Shown: piece after piece, positions 43,908 to 49,059 of the stretch
How positions within the stretch are numbered: the first letter of the stretch is position 1
Layout of the letters: each line of letters begins with the position of its first letter
From: Phallusia mammillata
Lineage: Eukaryota
Direction: 5' to 3'
DNA: 64,000 nucleotides
NCBI GenBank assembly: GCA_965637545.1
Contig: OZ281500.1
Span: 7,440,001-7,504,000 of the forward strand
Notes under the pieces: generated by a model
Database searches by the model: none
What the model saw: the letters and a program-made list of their open reading frames with translations, nothing else
Told to the model about the DNA's origin: nothing
Program-made: the position numbers and the translations under genes

Positions 43908-46900
43908 ATGGATACAGCAAGAATTTTCTCGTGTATCGTTTTGTTGCTGATGCTAAGCGTGTTGTCAATGGGAAAGTTGAAAAAGCGTGAGAAACGACAA
44001 TCCGAAGAGGTAAGTCACATGAATTTTATGCTTTTTTGCAGTGTTTCAAAATAATTTTTGAAATACATTGCTTCAACGATCTTGATTCGGTCGTCTTTGC
44101 AGTTATTGTTTTCAATCCAATTAAGTTTCTTGTTTATCTGCAACCAGCGGTGGTAAGCGATTTAAGGTTGTTTGAAACACATAAATAAATGGAAACTAAA
44201 CTTAACTAGCTGCATAATAAAAGGGACATACTAAAGTCGCCACCCATAATATAATAAAATGCCTTCCCCTCCTAACATAGGTGACTTGTTTGTTTCTCGG
44301 AGAAACTCATTTGGTAAATGAACGGTGGCGATATGGAAACGGCACCAAATACTTCCAGTGCGTTTGTACCAGTTCCGGAATACCACGATGCGATTGGTTT
44401 ACCACATCAGGTAAGAGCAGCCTCACTAATAGCTCAAATTCGTTTACTTTTACCGTTGGTGTCGCCCGTGTTTTAAGCCGCCTAGATCAGTGGTTCCCAA
44501 CCTATGGGTCGCGACCCAAAGTTGGGTCGCCTGAACATTCTGTTGGGTCGCTTGTTTTAGTGACAATTACAGCATCTACTTTTTGACACCTCGTAGCGTT
44601 ACTTTTATATTACCCAAGGGCTTTAAATTGTTGCCCAATAACAACTTCACCACAACTTGTCGTGATAATGGTTAAAACTGTTTGTGACGTCATAAAGTGA
44701 TGTGTTAGCTCACAGAAGAGCGTTGTTTGATATAATCCCTCGTTAGCTAATAATGCCTCGTTAGCTCCAAGTTCGGAATAAATGGAAATGTTTGGTCGTA
44801 AAAAAAAACAGCGTTTGTTCGTTATAAGGTTACTGATTTGCTAAACTGGCATAGTAATTTTCAAAAAGCTTTTCCAACTTACAGACAAAAATACAACTAA
44901 AATAGCATGTCCATGGGTCGCGAGAAACCACAAAACTAAATTTTGGTAAATATTTGGGTCACGTTAAAAAAAGGTTGGGAACCACTGGCCTAGATAACGA
45001 GTGTTAAGCAACAACCTGAAAACATGAGCGACTTCACAGAAACTTAAAAATGACGGGTACTTTTTTGCATGAAGTAAAGTTTTTTTGTAGTTGTTCGACG
45101 ACGTTGCTACGATCGCGCATTTAGAAGATACAGAACGACTGATGACCGATGGGAACGGCTTGTACGAGGGAAAACTCTTGACTGTGTGTGTGAACAAAGA
45201 GCTGGGTCTCGAAGAATGCAGATATCATGCTCGGGAGAAAGTGAGTGACATTTTTTTCGTTTTTTATCACCACGATTGATGTTATTTGTATTAAAGCTAG
45301 GAATGTATTAAACAAACATGTCGGTAATTTAAAAAATATAAACTAGTGATTCTCAAACGGTGTGCCGTGGCATATTAATGCTCTGCGAGAGATTGCCACC
45401 AAGCATGCCGCGAAATATTCGTTATTTAAAAGTGCAGACATTACCTGGTGTTTTATGCGTTAATGACCAAAATCTGCATGACAACATTTAGAATCTAATT
45501 TGTCATAAAAAACAATCTCACCCACCACAATAAAATTGTAAATTAATTTTTGTTACGTTGGCAAAGTGAGCCAACCAAAATTAGTTTGGTAGTGCTTTGC
45601 ATGCCTGAAAAATTCGAGAACCACTTATATCAACAATAACCATACAACGGTGAGTTAGGAACTCAGCACATACCTTACATAAAAAATGCGCTACTGTTTT
45701 TTTGCTTGTGGCCTGCTTTTCCGTACTTATGCAGCTTCTTAGTTTCTTTGTAGATCGTTGCCACAGCGGCGGTCAATCGTATCGCACTGGTGACGACTGG
45801 CAAACCAGTGACATCACCGGGTTAGTGATGGACTGCCAGTGCTTGGGATCCGAAAGAGTTTCCTGTCGAGCTTCAGGTGAGACTTTACATACATAGCTGC
45901 AGACAATGTTGTGTAATGCTGGGGCTCTAATCTTATTGACCGAAGCAGAGACATATTTTAGTGAGTCCGTTACAAGGGATTTTATGTCACACATTCTTAA
46001 AATTAAATCAAACAGAGAACGTGTTCCAATGTAAAGAACGTATAGCATAGTAGTCGAAAACCTATTTTAGCGCTGCGAGCCGGTTCTAAGCAGACAGTAT
46101 TTTCTGGACCGACTCTCAATTAAACAAAAACAACAATTATTCGATGAAAACAAATTTATAACTATTCACCAGTTACTATGACGCTGATTTGAAGTGCATG
46201 GCTTTTTGTCGTAGGCTACTGTCATTATGCCTTTTTTTGACTTTCTTAACCAGAACTCAGTATGCTCGCTTGCCTTAAACGTTACAAATATATTTTACAT
46301 TAAAATGTCGGTATGTTTTACAGTTACCACTGACGTTCCGCGCCCAGAAGTAAACGCGCAGTGGGTAGAAGATCACATTGTTTATGGTCAGAGGGTGCTA
46401 AGGCCAAAGCTCGCCACTTTGCAAGCCTGCGACACTGGATCGAGAGTAAGCAAAGTCGAGTAAGGTCGGTGAAAATGATCTAAATCTTGTTGGTCGAATT
46501 TGAAGGTGGTAAGCAGTGGATACACTTGGAATAGAACCTCAGAAGTTCTTACTAGTACTTTCGTTGTCGAACGATGTATTTGTCAGGATGCTCTTATATC
46601 GTGCTCCCCTTACACCGTTTCACGTCGCCCAGGTACAACATTTTAATCTAATGTTTTTATTTGCTATTTTGATACAGCTAATTTGTCTAAAATTTTAGGA
46701 ATAAATTCGATAAATGCGTTTATTCTTTTATTGAAATTTTAATATTGCAGAGCCGAAACGGTCCCCCAAATTTCTCCAGCGGTTTCCCAAAATAATTCGT
46801 TTAAGCAAATATGGCTATTTTTTGGTATTTAAATGAAACACTTGCGGTCTCTTAAAACTACTTAGCGGTCACCCAAACCAAACCTTAAAAAAACCTGAAC

Positions 46901-48176
46901 ACAAGTGTTTTTGTTCTTAGTGCTGGTCAACCATTTAAAGAAAATTATATTTGTTGTTATTTTTTAGAATAAAACTGAAGAAAACTTTATGTTTTGTTGC
47001 TTCGCACTCTATGCTAAAGTCGTGTCGTTTGATTTACTATATGTGAAATGCGTTTTGACTACAGAACCGCATTGCGTAACGGAAGATGGCCAAGTTCGGC
47101 TTGTGGGAGAAGTTTGGACAAAAACTCATCACTCGCACGAAAACCTTAGTTGGCGCTGTTCCTGTCGGGCACACGGCGACAAAGAATGCAGAGATATTGG
47201 TGAGTAACTGTATTCAACACCTTCATAAGTTAAAGATTGCCACCCTTTTTCCCGAAAACTCTGATTACAGTAAAACTCGGTTAACCCACATCCGTTTGGA
47301 CCAAAAAAATGTATCTGGATAAGGCAAAGATCCTGATTTACCGATTTCTAAAAGATGTTTTTTGAACGTGGTAAATGCCCTTCGTTATTAATGAATGTAT
47401 GTTTCTGGTAGGTTACTGTGAGGATCCTCATCCTCCACCCAATGGGGGTTTGGTTTGTGTTGTTGCTGGAAAATCAAGCCCTAAACAGTCAACATACTGC
47501 AAACCCATGTGTGCCCAGGTATGAACATTTCAAACTGCATGGTATTGGTAAATTCTCATAACTATTCATAAATTTAGACATCTGGTAGAAAAAAGTCAAA
47601 TAATTTATTCTATAACCACATTTGGCTGGCTATTTACTATCTCAAGTAATTTTCCACCAGACCAGGACTTGAGTTGTTTTGAGATGTATTTGCTCGAATT
47701 GTCAGTAAAGTTTATTTTTTGGTGTAAATTTTAGGGATTCGATTTTGTCAACACCCAGCGCATTTATCGGATATGGGAAGTTTGTAATCACGTGACAACG
47801 CACAGGTGGTCTGGCGGCTACGCTGAAGATTCCTTACTTATCGGAAAATGCCAAAGTAAGTGAAATTTATTTGGGTATGGTGACCTGCGATATAAGTCTT
47901 GCCTAATATCAAACATATCTTACTTACAGGAACATCCCGAGAACGCGGAAGACGGTCTTTGTATTTGCCCACTGCTGATTGCTTGCGATTGTCACGGTAT
48001 CAAATACAAGAGGTAAGCTTAACAATAATAATCTTAAGGCAGAACAATGGGATTTTTACCTTGGTTTTTATTTGCAGATAAAGCAGGAGTTTATTCAACT
48101 ACTTCATGCTAATGGCTTGTGTGGAAACAAGTGCCAAGCAAAGTTCTTTCGTTGCGGCGATCGTACCTCTGAATAA
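43908..48176 (+). CDS. Secreted protein with fibronectin type I (FN1) module array and C-terminal sushi-like cysteine-rich region (~405 aa, 11 exons)
   Basis: Exons 43908-44009, 44281-44410, 45091-45240, 45754-45876, 46324-46445, 46587-46632, 47065-47199, 47412-47518, 47735-47855, 47930-48012, 48078-48176 (1218 nt, frame-consistent; exons 5-6 least certain). Signal peptide, KKREKR, four C-x9-13-W-x10-13-CxC-x7-12-C FN1 modules, then CEDPHPPPNGGLVC...CKPMCAQGFDF...W...C. Confidence 0.82.
44488..44987. mobile_element. hAT MITE (Buster/Charlie-like)
   Basis: TIRs CAGTGGTTCCCAACCT / AGGTTGGGAACCACTG; perfect TSD gcctagat. Confidence 0.93.
45344..45626. mobile_element. Degenerate hAT MITE
   Basis: Termini TAGTGATTCTCAAA / TTCGAGAACCACTT; TSD atataaac/atatcaac. 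Confidence 0.7.
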
Positions 48177-49059
48177 CAGCAATTGTCGCAGAAGCAGAAA
48201 ACCTATATGTACAGAGTGACATTATAATGTGACGTTTATGAGCTTGAGTGAATACAGGTGCAAATTGTTGCCGCTACACCAACGGCCTTGGAGAAAGCTT
48301 TCGACCAAAGAAATAACAATGGCAATGTTCCAAACGAATTATGTGCAGCTATGCTAAACTATAAGTTTTTGTGTTCTTTTATTTGTAAATTTTGGTATAT
48401 GTTTTACCGTAGATAACTATGGTTTTACTTTGCTGCATGTCGTACGTTGATCGTGTTAAATTTAACTGTTATGGATTGTACTTACCAGCAAATAAAAAAT
48501 AATACTCAACCAGTTTTGATTGTTACGCATCAGTGGAAACAGCTGTTTCCCAGACCATATGTTGACAACCAATTCAGTATTTGCAAAACCCTTTTAGAAA
48601 TAGTGTTATGTTATCAAACCCAAAACAAGCTCGCGAGCGGAAAAGTAAACACCCGTCGTCCAGCTGTTTTATATTGATCGCAATTTCATCATTAAATTTA
48701 ATGTTGCGCGTAACAGAATTGAAATATTATTGGCAAATTAACGATGTACGTCGAAAGACCTGTGGTAAAAACTTTTTGGTTGTATTGGGCAAATTTATGC
48801 GAGTCCAGAACTACTCGTTGCATTCATTACTGTCAAACTGGTTTTAAACCGTCTCCTTTGTGGTAAATTTGAATAAAAAAGTCTCAAAAACTACTCAATC
48901 ACTGCATAATAGCCTATGATTTCATATTTTTGCTGTAATCTAGGATGCATTTGTTGTAAGCTGTGTCTCGATATGAATTTGTGAAGTGATTTTCTAAATT
49001 ATTAAAGATTAGTTAAATACTTATTTCAACATTTACACACAACTGCATTTGTACATTAA

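Follow-up and report, generated by a model that had tools for sequence, protein, structure and literature searches.

A stand-alone ascidian gene for an array of FN1 modules resembling the head of vertebrate fibronectin

The 64,000-nucleotide stretch of the Phallusia mammillata genome analysed here (contig OZ281500.1 of assembly GCA_965637545.1, positions 7,440,001 to 7,504,000 of the forward strand; "the window", to which positions refer unless another contig is named) contains a gene for a secreted protein with an array of FN1 modules. From its N-terminus, the protein carries a signal peptide, a dibasic site and a Gln, and then five FN1 modules, a sushi-like domain with six cysteines and a tail with four. 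The gene is real, expressed and conserved across ascidians. At the level of profiles, modules 1 to 3 are collinear homologues of the first three modules of vertebrate fibronectin (1F1-2F1-3F1), and module 5 is of the 6F1 type. Taken as a whole, the data are best explained by a stand-alone adaptor that would derive from the fibronectin head, a reading to which we assign a probability of about 0.6. The family is in the databases already, but its architecture, that of an FN1-array protein, is apparently undescribed as far as we have seen: the literature search found no paper that describes the gene or contains the accession numbers of the family.

Fibronectin is regarded as a vertebrate hallmark, and the tunicate fibronectin has been noted for its fewer N-terminal FN1 modules (PMC5006582, PMC4422808, PMC3308698). 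In the literature on fibronectin evolution that we found, only the large tunicate Fn gene is described. Ascidians do have a collinear counterpart to head modules 1 to 3, but it lies in a separate gene with a different C-terminus, which databases either mis-name "fibronectin" or leave uncharacterised. The gene offers a handle, in the tractable Ciona, on the origin of the fibronectin head, and also on the question whether binding of the head type, such as self-assembly and the binding of beta-zipper ligands, is older than vertebrates.

The gene, its product and its orthologues

The gene lies on the + strand, with its ATG at 43908 and its stop codon at 48174-48176. Its 11 exons join to one open frame of 432 amino acids, and the window contains no runs of N. 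Transcript contigs from four runs of four studies, aligned to 43700-48500, join these exons through 10 introns, all of them GT..AG on the + strand. Nine of the ten joints are present in every run, and the tenth (47855 to 47930) in three of the four. Single contigs of 1.49-1.59 kb cover the whole gene, from 43815-43888 to 48349-48373. Over all contigs, the 5' ends fall at 43815-43913 and the 3' ends at 48349-48380, which describes a transcript of 1.59 kb with its own ends. Parts of the locus are contained in 20 public runs, most of which hold about a quarter of its words, as expected for spliced RNA. The exons are as follows:

Exon 1, 43815-44009, + strand: 5' untranslated region, ATG 43908, signal peptide (about amino acids 1-22), KLKKREKR at 43974-43997, then Gln31; joint from 44009 to 44281.
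Exon 2, 44281-44410, + strand: FN1 module 1, with 35 residues from Cys1 to Cys4 and a short Cys3-Cys4 loop like that of 1F1.
Exon 3, 45091-45240, + strand: phase 1-1; FN1 module 2, of the 2F1/4F1 type.
Exon 4, 45754-45876, + strand: phase 1-1; FN1 module 3, 3F1-like, with Asn-Arg before the module as in fibronectin.
Exon 5, 46324-46445, + strand: conserved linker of about 35 amino acids, then the first Cys and the first strand of FN1 module 4.
Exon 6, 46506-46632, + strand: remainder of FN1 module 4, beyond a 60-nucleotide phase-0 intron (46446-46505).
Exon 7, 47065-47199, + strand: phase 1-1; FN1 module 5, 6F1-like.
Exon 8, 47412-47518, + strand: first half of the six-Cys domain, which is sushi (complement control protein, CCP)-like; contig joints.
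Exon 9, 47735-47855, + strand: second half of the sushi-like domain; joints 47518/47735 and 47855/47930 in three or four runs.
Exon 10, 47930-48012, + strand: Arg-rich linker and start of the four-Cys tail; contig joints, conserved in orthologues.
Exon 11, 48078-48373, + strand: helix-strand four-Cys tail, stop codon 48174-48176 and 3' untranslated region.

A preliminary description of the window, made from its letters alone, had quoted the string KKREKR-Q, four FN1 modules and a sushi-like exon. All of these strings are in the sequence, and the quoted exons are real, but exons 47735-47855 and 47930-48012 had been overlooked. The linker that the description placed after the third module exists and is conserved; its exon, however, ends in the first Cys of a further FN1 module, the fifth to be found and module 4 in order.

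Two polymorphisms touch the transcript. Codon 12 (43941-43943) reads Leu in the genome and Phe in the database protein, and at 44362 one run has A in place of G. The summed contig depth is very high, at up to about 1900, in three intronic stretches (44482-44558, 44827-44987 and 46753-46897), where all four runs also show numerous loose ends. Most likely, these stretches belong to high-copy repeats of which other copies are transcribed.

Apart from the L12F difference in the signal peptide, the gene model is identical to a database protein (UniProt A0A6F9DCB4, CAB3246632.1; P0001 below). Searches were done exon by exon first, and P0001 was used afterwards. Scored on this whole protein, the Pfam fn1 model (PF00039) gives 35.4 bits, against a gathering cut-off of 27. 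Two orthologues score 46.5 and 41 bits, and two more fall under the cut-off with 19.3 and 23.3. The single exons 2, 3 and 4 reach 15.5, 19.6 and 25.1 bits. In the whole protein, Pfam finds no family but fn1, and no fn2, fn3 or Sushi at E ≤ 1, in agreement with the earlier statement that FN2 and FN3 modules are absent. Modules of the C...CxC...C pattern number five in P0001 and in each orthologue, but six in the two proteins of stolidobranch type, that of Styela and P0009. The Trp and the Cys residues of CxC...C are invariant in the alignment of the five module exons. Of the 30 Cys in the mature protein, the FN1 modules account for 20, the sushi-like domain for 6 and the tail for 4, and none is obviously free. 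The even count fits disulfides that are all intramolecular, and given this count the protein is probably a monomer.

Exon 6, which holds most of module 4, has no sequence match by itself in Pfam or among PDB sequences. An AlphaFold2 model of modules 4 and 5, built on the orthologue alignment, is all-beta with a predicted local distance difference test score (pLDDT) of 78. When the model was compared with 48,161 chains, the ten top-ranking ones were without exception FnI modules (Z 5.2-6.9). Module 5 superimposes on human 6FnI with Z 6.9, a root-mean-square deviation of 1.5 and 33-38% identity, and on the FnI module of factor XII with Z 6.7. Module 4 superimposes on the finger of tPA with Z 6.2 and a deviation of 1.9 over 48 aligned residues. 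Both modules are thus predicted to have the FN1 fold.

A profile of the five module exons, searched against 1.84 billion representative proteins, retrieved 27 proteins at E ≤ 0.001. The top match is P0001, with five matched stretches over its 432 amino acids. The other matches are vertebrate fibronectins and their fragments, a few proteins of about 370-480 amino acids (P0009, P0016) and a fragment of 89 amino acids (P0017). No tunicate Fn is among the 27, and this search found no FN1 array outside tunicates and vertebrates. The orthologues are 36-61% identical to the Phallusia protein over 90-98% of its length:

Clavelina lepadiformis XP_076811193 (LOC143455306): 61% identity, named "uncharacterized".
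Ciona savignyi H2ZGH9: named "Fibronectin type-I domain-containing protein".
Ciona intestinalis XP_002126304 (LOC100175487): version 1 of the RefSeq record named "fibronectin", version 2 "uncharacterized protein LOC100175487".
Styela clava XP_039272990 (LOC120347174): six modules.
Further orthologues: sequences from marine metagenome and metatranscriptome sets.

All eleven exons recur in the Clavelina gene, and the Ciona gene differs in lacking one of the introns; both retain the intron within module 4. Immediately upstream of the gene, in Phallusia (window 30000-43800) as in Clavelina and Ciona, is a gene for a CatSper-type ion channel, which has MED24 nested on the other strand. In other ascidians (Clavelina, both Ciona species and Styela) the orthologue is likewise a gene of its own, which, together with the ends of the transcript, bears out the earlier proposal of a stand-alone secreted FN1-array protein. 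Upstream of the FN1-array gene, the window also contains three tRNA genes, at 34485-34567 (- strand), 36870-36942 (+ strand) and 37940-38012 (- strand), with Rfam scores of 62-65 bits.

The record of the Phallusia protein in UniProt and nr is auto-named "fibronectin". The name is misleading for a protein of 432 amino acids without FN2 or FN3. By its predicted composition, with FN2, FN3 and an FN3-borne RGD all absent, the protein is not a fibronectin. The lack of an RGD, stated in the preliminary description, holds for Phallusia, but not for the orthologues of Clavelina and Ciona intestinalis, which carry RGD in module 3. The motif lies in the xGDxW turn of this module (window 45790-45800; IGD in human 3F1), where C. 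savignyi has KGD and Phallusia TGD. Judged from these sequences, it is a possible integrin motif in the two species, and it is not conserved across species.

Correspondence of the modules with the fibronectin head

For the comparison, FN1 modules were cut from eight family members and seven vertebrate fibronectins, and position-specific profiles were scored both ways. The profile of module 3 scores best on 3F1 (40.3 bits, followed by 11F1 with 31.6), and 3F1 is also best in the reverse direction (31.1 bits). In a phmmer search of PDB sequences, exon 4 matches the human fibronectin 2F1-3F1 pair with E 4.8e-12, and the best stretch falls on 3F1. Exon 4 scores 32.5 bits on human 3F1 and 12-24.2 on the other human modules. 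The PDB matches of exon 3 are spread over 1F1, 4F1 and 5F1, and exons 2 and 6 find nothing useful. Module 5 (exon 7) matches best to 6F1 chains (17.2 bits), and its profile points weakly to 6F1/7F1. The human fibronectin strings that the preliminary description had quoted are present in the PDB alignments.

Pair and triple profiles, which include the linkers, were scored on five full-length vertebrate fibronectins. The profile of modules 2 and 3 reaches 53-62 bits on 2F1+3F1, which is its best placement in all five, by 10-14 bits; elsewhere it scores 43-46 bits on 4F1+5F1 and 22-48 on 10F1+11F1. The profile of modules 1 to 3 aligns end to end with 1F1+2F1+3F1 in four of the five (67-83 bits), and the next placement scores 45-53. 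Several details are common to the family and fibronectin as well. They include the Asn-Arg-Cys-His junction of modules 2 and 3, the "...ISC" end of module 2, and the dibasic site and Gln after the signal peptide, a feature of bony-fish fibronectins and of five out of eight family members. In a search of the whole Phallusia genome with a profile of vertebrate 2F1-3F1, the best match is exon 4 of this gene (31.7 bits).

The linker and module 4 are conserved in eight orthologues. Their joint profile aligns, if at all, with 6F1, at less than 3 bits. A likeness of "TGSRVV" in module 4 to the 5F1-6F1 linker of fish fibronectin was considered and dropped, as the profile of linker and module 4 is silent there.

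A maximum-likelihood tree was built from 115 modules, each only about 40 residues long. Modules 1, 2 and 4 each form their own clade across species, with support of 88, 95 and 94 in the Shimodaira-Hasegawa-like approximate likelihood ratio test (SH-aLRT), and module 5 does so together with module 6 (92). Module 3 does not form one clade, and two modules of Phallusia Fn are found among its rows. Modules 4 and 5 group with 6F1 (SH-aLRT 90), and the deep nodes are otherwise not resolved. The separate clades indicate that the modules are old, and not recent duplicates of one another.

The C-terminal domain

The C-terminal 143 amino acids are modelled by AlphaFold2 as a single compact unit (pLDDT 76, predicted template modelling score 0.76). 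A beta part is followed by a helix at model residues 106-122 and a strand at 130-137 (pLDDT 81-95). The Sushi family (PF00084) is not matched in Pfam, neither by the exons at E ≤ 10 nor by whole proteins at E ≤ 1, and the tail exons have no Pfam match either. A PDB sequence search with the C-terminal profile of the family found no match, and a Foldseek search with the model found nothing in the PDB at E ≤ 0.001. An exhaustive structure aligner places more than 15 CCP-containing entries on model residues 7-87, weakly, with Z 2.5-3.7. The best of these alignments is with a short consensus repeat (SCR) of E-selectin, at 25% identity.

In the ESM Atlas, the nearest shapes have template modelling (TM) scores of 0.73-0.80, normalised by query over about 125 residues. 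They belong to clusters of uncharacterised chordate proteins of about 214-259 amino acids, and one of these clusters is named after zebrafish si:ch1073-126c3.2. The zebrafish protein is a plasma protein that is made in the liver and male-biased (PMC4829857). By features, the Atlas also matches the C-terminal part to Sushi and Sushi_2 clusters (0.80-0.82). Word-index searches with the C-terminal region or its alignment returned the query itself or nothing, and are uninformative owing to their limits on shared words and length. The Phallusia genome was also searched for paralogues of exons 8 and 9, and only the exons themselves were found. The domain with six Cys that had been described as sushi-like is present, and the weak model matches make a sushi fold plausible, but sequence-level matches to sushi were not found and the sushi identity is putative.

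Tunicate fibronectin, the origin of the array and known systems

The Phallusia Fn gene was located by six-frame fn1 and fn2 searches and a local profile scan of the 240-Mb genome. It lies on contig 8 at 16870207-16922373 (about 16.87-16.92 Mb), with the following modules:

16870207, 16871078 and 16873340: three N-terminal FN1 modules.
16873845 and 16874185: two FN2 modules.
16882760 and 16883629: two FN1 modules after the FN2 pair.
16921420-16922373: three C-terminal FN1 modules.

With the 8F1 profile, the module at 16882760 reaches 42.9 bits, and in the tree it falls inside the vertebrate 8F1 clade (support 99); the 11F1 profile gives 34.8 bits on the module at 16921531. The second N-terminal module matches 1F1 with 20.9 bits and module 1 of the window gene with 27.9. 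The N-terminal FN1 set also scores weakly on 6F1. No 2F1- or 3F1-type module was found in Phallusia Fn, neither by profile scores nor in the genome-wide search with the 2F1-3F1 profile. The fibronectin of Ciona (Ci-FN) has 3698 amino acids, with FN2, 29 FN3 and Ig modules, and carries three N-terminal and three C-terminal FN1 around FN2/FN3 (PMC5006582). The statement in the preliminary description that the tunicate fibronectin has a single FN1 is therefore outdated. Phallusia Fn is in the module order of vertebrates, so that FN1 arrays had been linked to the other parts of fibronectin before the two lineages diverged. By this comparison, the FN1-FN2-FN1...FN1 layout predates the tunicate-vertebrate split, and the ascidian 2F1-3F1-type pair appears to sit in the window gene and not in Fn.

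Contig 5 contains FN1-only coding exons at 6848110-6854775 (+ strand), with seven modules and Pro/Arg-rich linkers, which probably represent two tandem genes. Genome-wide, the sequence most like 2F1 is the module at 6851156, which reaches 36.5 bits with the 2F1 profile and comes second in the 2F1-3F1 search of the genome, with 29.1 bits. The module at 6849225 is 1F1-like (22.1 bits).

We favour the view that the window gene would descend from the 5' head of an ancestral fibronectin common to tunicates and vertebrates, by partial duplication or split before the ascidian radiation. The sushi-like C-terminal unit would have been gained afterwards, and the tunicate Fn proper would have kept a 1F1-like and a weakly 6F1-like module and no 2F1-3F1-type pair. 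Several points weigh against this view. Module 1 by itself is unspecific for 1F1 in profile scores, and the profile of module 2 ties between 2F1 (36.6 bits) and 4F1 (35.7). Module 4 corresponds to no particular fibronectin module, either in the PDB search or by profiles. The tree fails to recover modules 3 and 3F1, or modules 2 and 2F1, as groups; forcing module 3 and 3F1 together costs 20.9 log-likelihood units, and with p = 0.153 in the approximately unbiased test the grouping is not rejected, but not shown either. The comparison with tunicate fibronectin used the sequence of the Phallusia Fn gene alone, as exons in six frames. The assignment of the C-terminal domain to the sushi type has no support at the sequence level. 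An outgroup would be needed to tell duplication, fission and donation to vertebrate fibronectin apart, and the mechanism considered below rests wholly on analogy with vertebrate modules. The preliminary description had the modules matching those of fibronectin specifically and in order. This holds for modules 3 and 5, for the pair of modules 2 and 3, and for the collinearity of modules 1 to 3 in four of five vertebrates, but not for modules 1 and 2 taken singly. A bolder version has the fibronectin head (1F1-2F1-3F1...6F1) surviving as a gene of its own in tunicates, either by partition of the ancestral fibronectin in two or with the vertebrate head built from the ancestor of this gene. We regard it as tentative, and on balance doubtful.

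Other origins of the array have to be considered. The gene could preserve an FN1 array from before fibronectin, which vertebrates later fused to FN3 repeats, as the preliminary description proposed. In every ascidian examined, the head-like array is indeed a separate gene; Phallusia Fn is without the 2F1-3F1-type pair, and the best 3F1-like exon of the genome is in the window gene. However, Phallusia Fn already has three FN1, two FN2, an FN1 nested within 8F1 and an 11F1-like module at its 3' end, and the 3+3 arrangement of Ci-FN likewise places the fusion before the tunicate-vertebrate split. Moreover, the 1.84 billion representatives yielded no FN1 array outside tunicates and vertebrates. 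A first fusion in vertebrates is thus weakened and not needed, as Phallusia Fn already joins FN1 and FN2, and we consider this origin improbable. Equally little credence is due to an array that arose by tandem duplications within tunicates, with a generic or convergent likeness to fibronectin. The unresolved deep nodes of the tree would allow it, modules 1 and 4 match nothing in particular, and other FN1-only genes exist on contig 5. Against it, the modules do not cluster together, as had been suggested as a mark of independent duplication, and four of the five positions form their own clades, although module 3 does not. The pair and triple profiles favour F2+F3 and F1+F2+F3 by 10-30 bits in almost every vertebrate examined, and the Asn-Arg-Cys-His junction and the dibasic-Gln start are common to fibronectin. 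With respect to role, the protein may be a humoral recognition or clotting-type factor and not a component of matrix assembly, with an FN1 array directed at microbial or wound ligands and a complement-control-like C-terminus. This is a live rival because the modelled C-terminal fold resembles that of a plasma protein, si:ch1073-126c3.2, among its nearest Atlas clusters, and the weak CCP matches of the model point the same way. These leads are at the level of the fold alone, however, and a sequence-level link was looked for and not found; a humoral role seems rather unlikely.

For the head-derived adaptor that we prefer, vertebrate modules suggest a mode of action. In vertebrates, 1F1-5F1 mediate self-association in fibril assembly, bind fibrin and adhesins, and bind extended peptides as a tandem beta-zipper. 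By analogy, the ascidian FN1 array would take up extended peptide segments of a partner through beta-strand addition, and the C-terminal globular unit would supply a second binding surface. The protein would then act as a soluble adaptor of the matrix or body fluid, or as a regulator of fibronectin-type assembly. If the fibronectin head does survive as a separate tunicate gene, head and body of fibronectin could be studied as two proteins that nature has separated and that act jointly in matrix assembly.

Among sushi/CCP modules, the closest are the selectin SCRs with six Cys and the fifth, aberrant domain of beta2-glycoprotein I; the sushi-like domain of the window protein likewise has six Cys and the Cys-x-x-Pro...Asn-Gly...Cys start. 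In contrast to these, the domain is predicted to pack against the helix-strand tail as one unit. The FN1 fold is common to tPA, factor XII and HGFA, as seen in the superpositions of module 4 on the tPA finger and of module 5 on the factor XII FnI. In those proteins, a single FN1 stands beside EGF, kringle and protease domains, none of which Pfam finds in the window protein. The tunicate fibronectins (Ci-FN and Phallusia Fn) occur in the same organisms and have FN1 modules, the second of which in Phallusia Fn is similar to module 1 of the window gene. The two Phallusia genes are, however, on different chromosome-scale contigs, the window gene on contig 7 and Fn on contig 8.

With the vertebrate fibronectin head (1F1-5F1 and 6F1), the protein shares its start (signal peptide, dibasic site, Gln), the encoding of one FN1 per phase-1 exon (modules 2, 3 and 5), the collinearity of modules 1 to 3 with 1F1-3F1 and the 6F1-like module 5. 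It differs in the absence of the 4F1-5F1 pair, in place of which it has the conserved linker and the divergent module 4. The FN2 and FN3 modules of vertebrate fibronectin, including the RGD-bearing FN3, and its C-terminal dimerising Cys pair have no counterpart in the window protein, which instead terminates in the sushi-like domain and the four-Cys tail.

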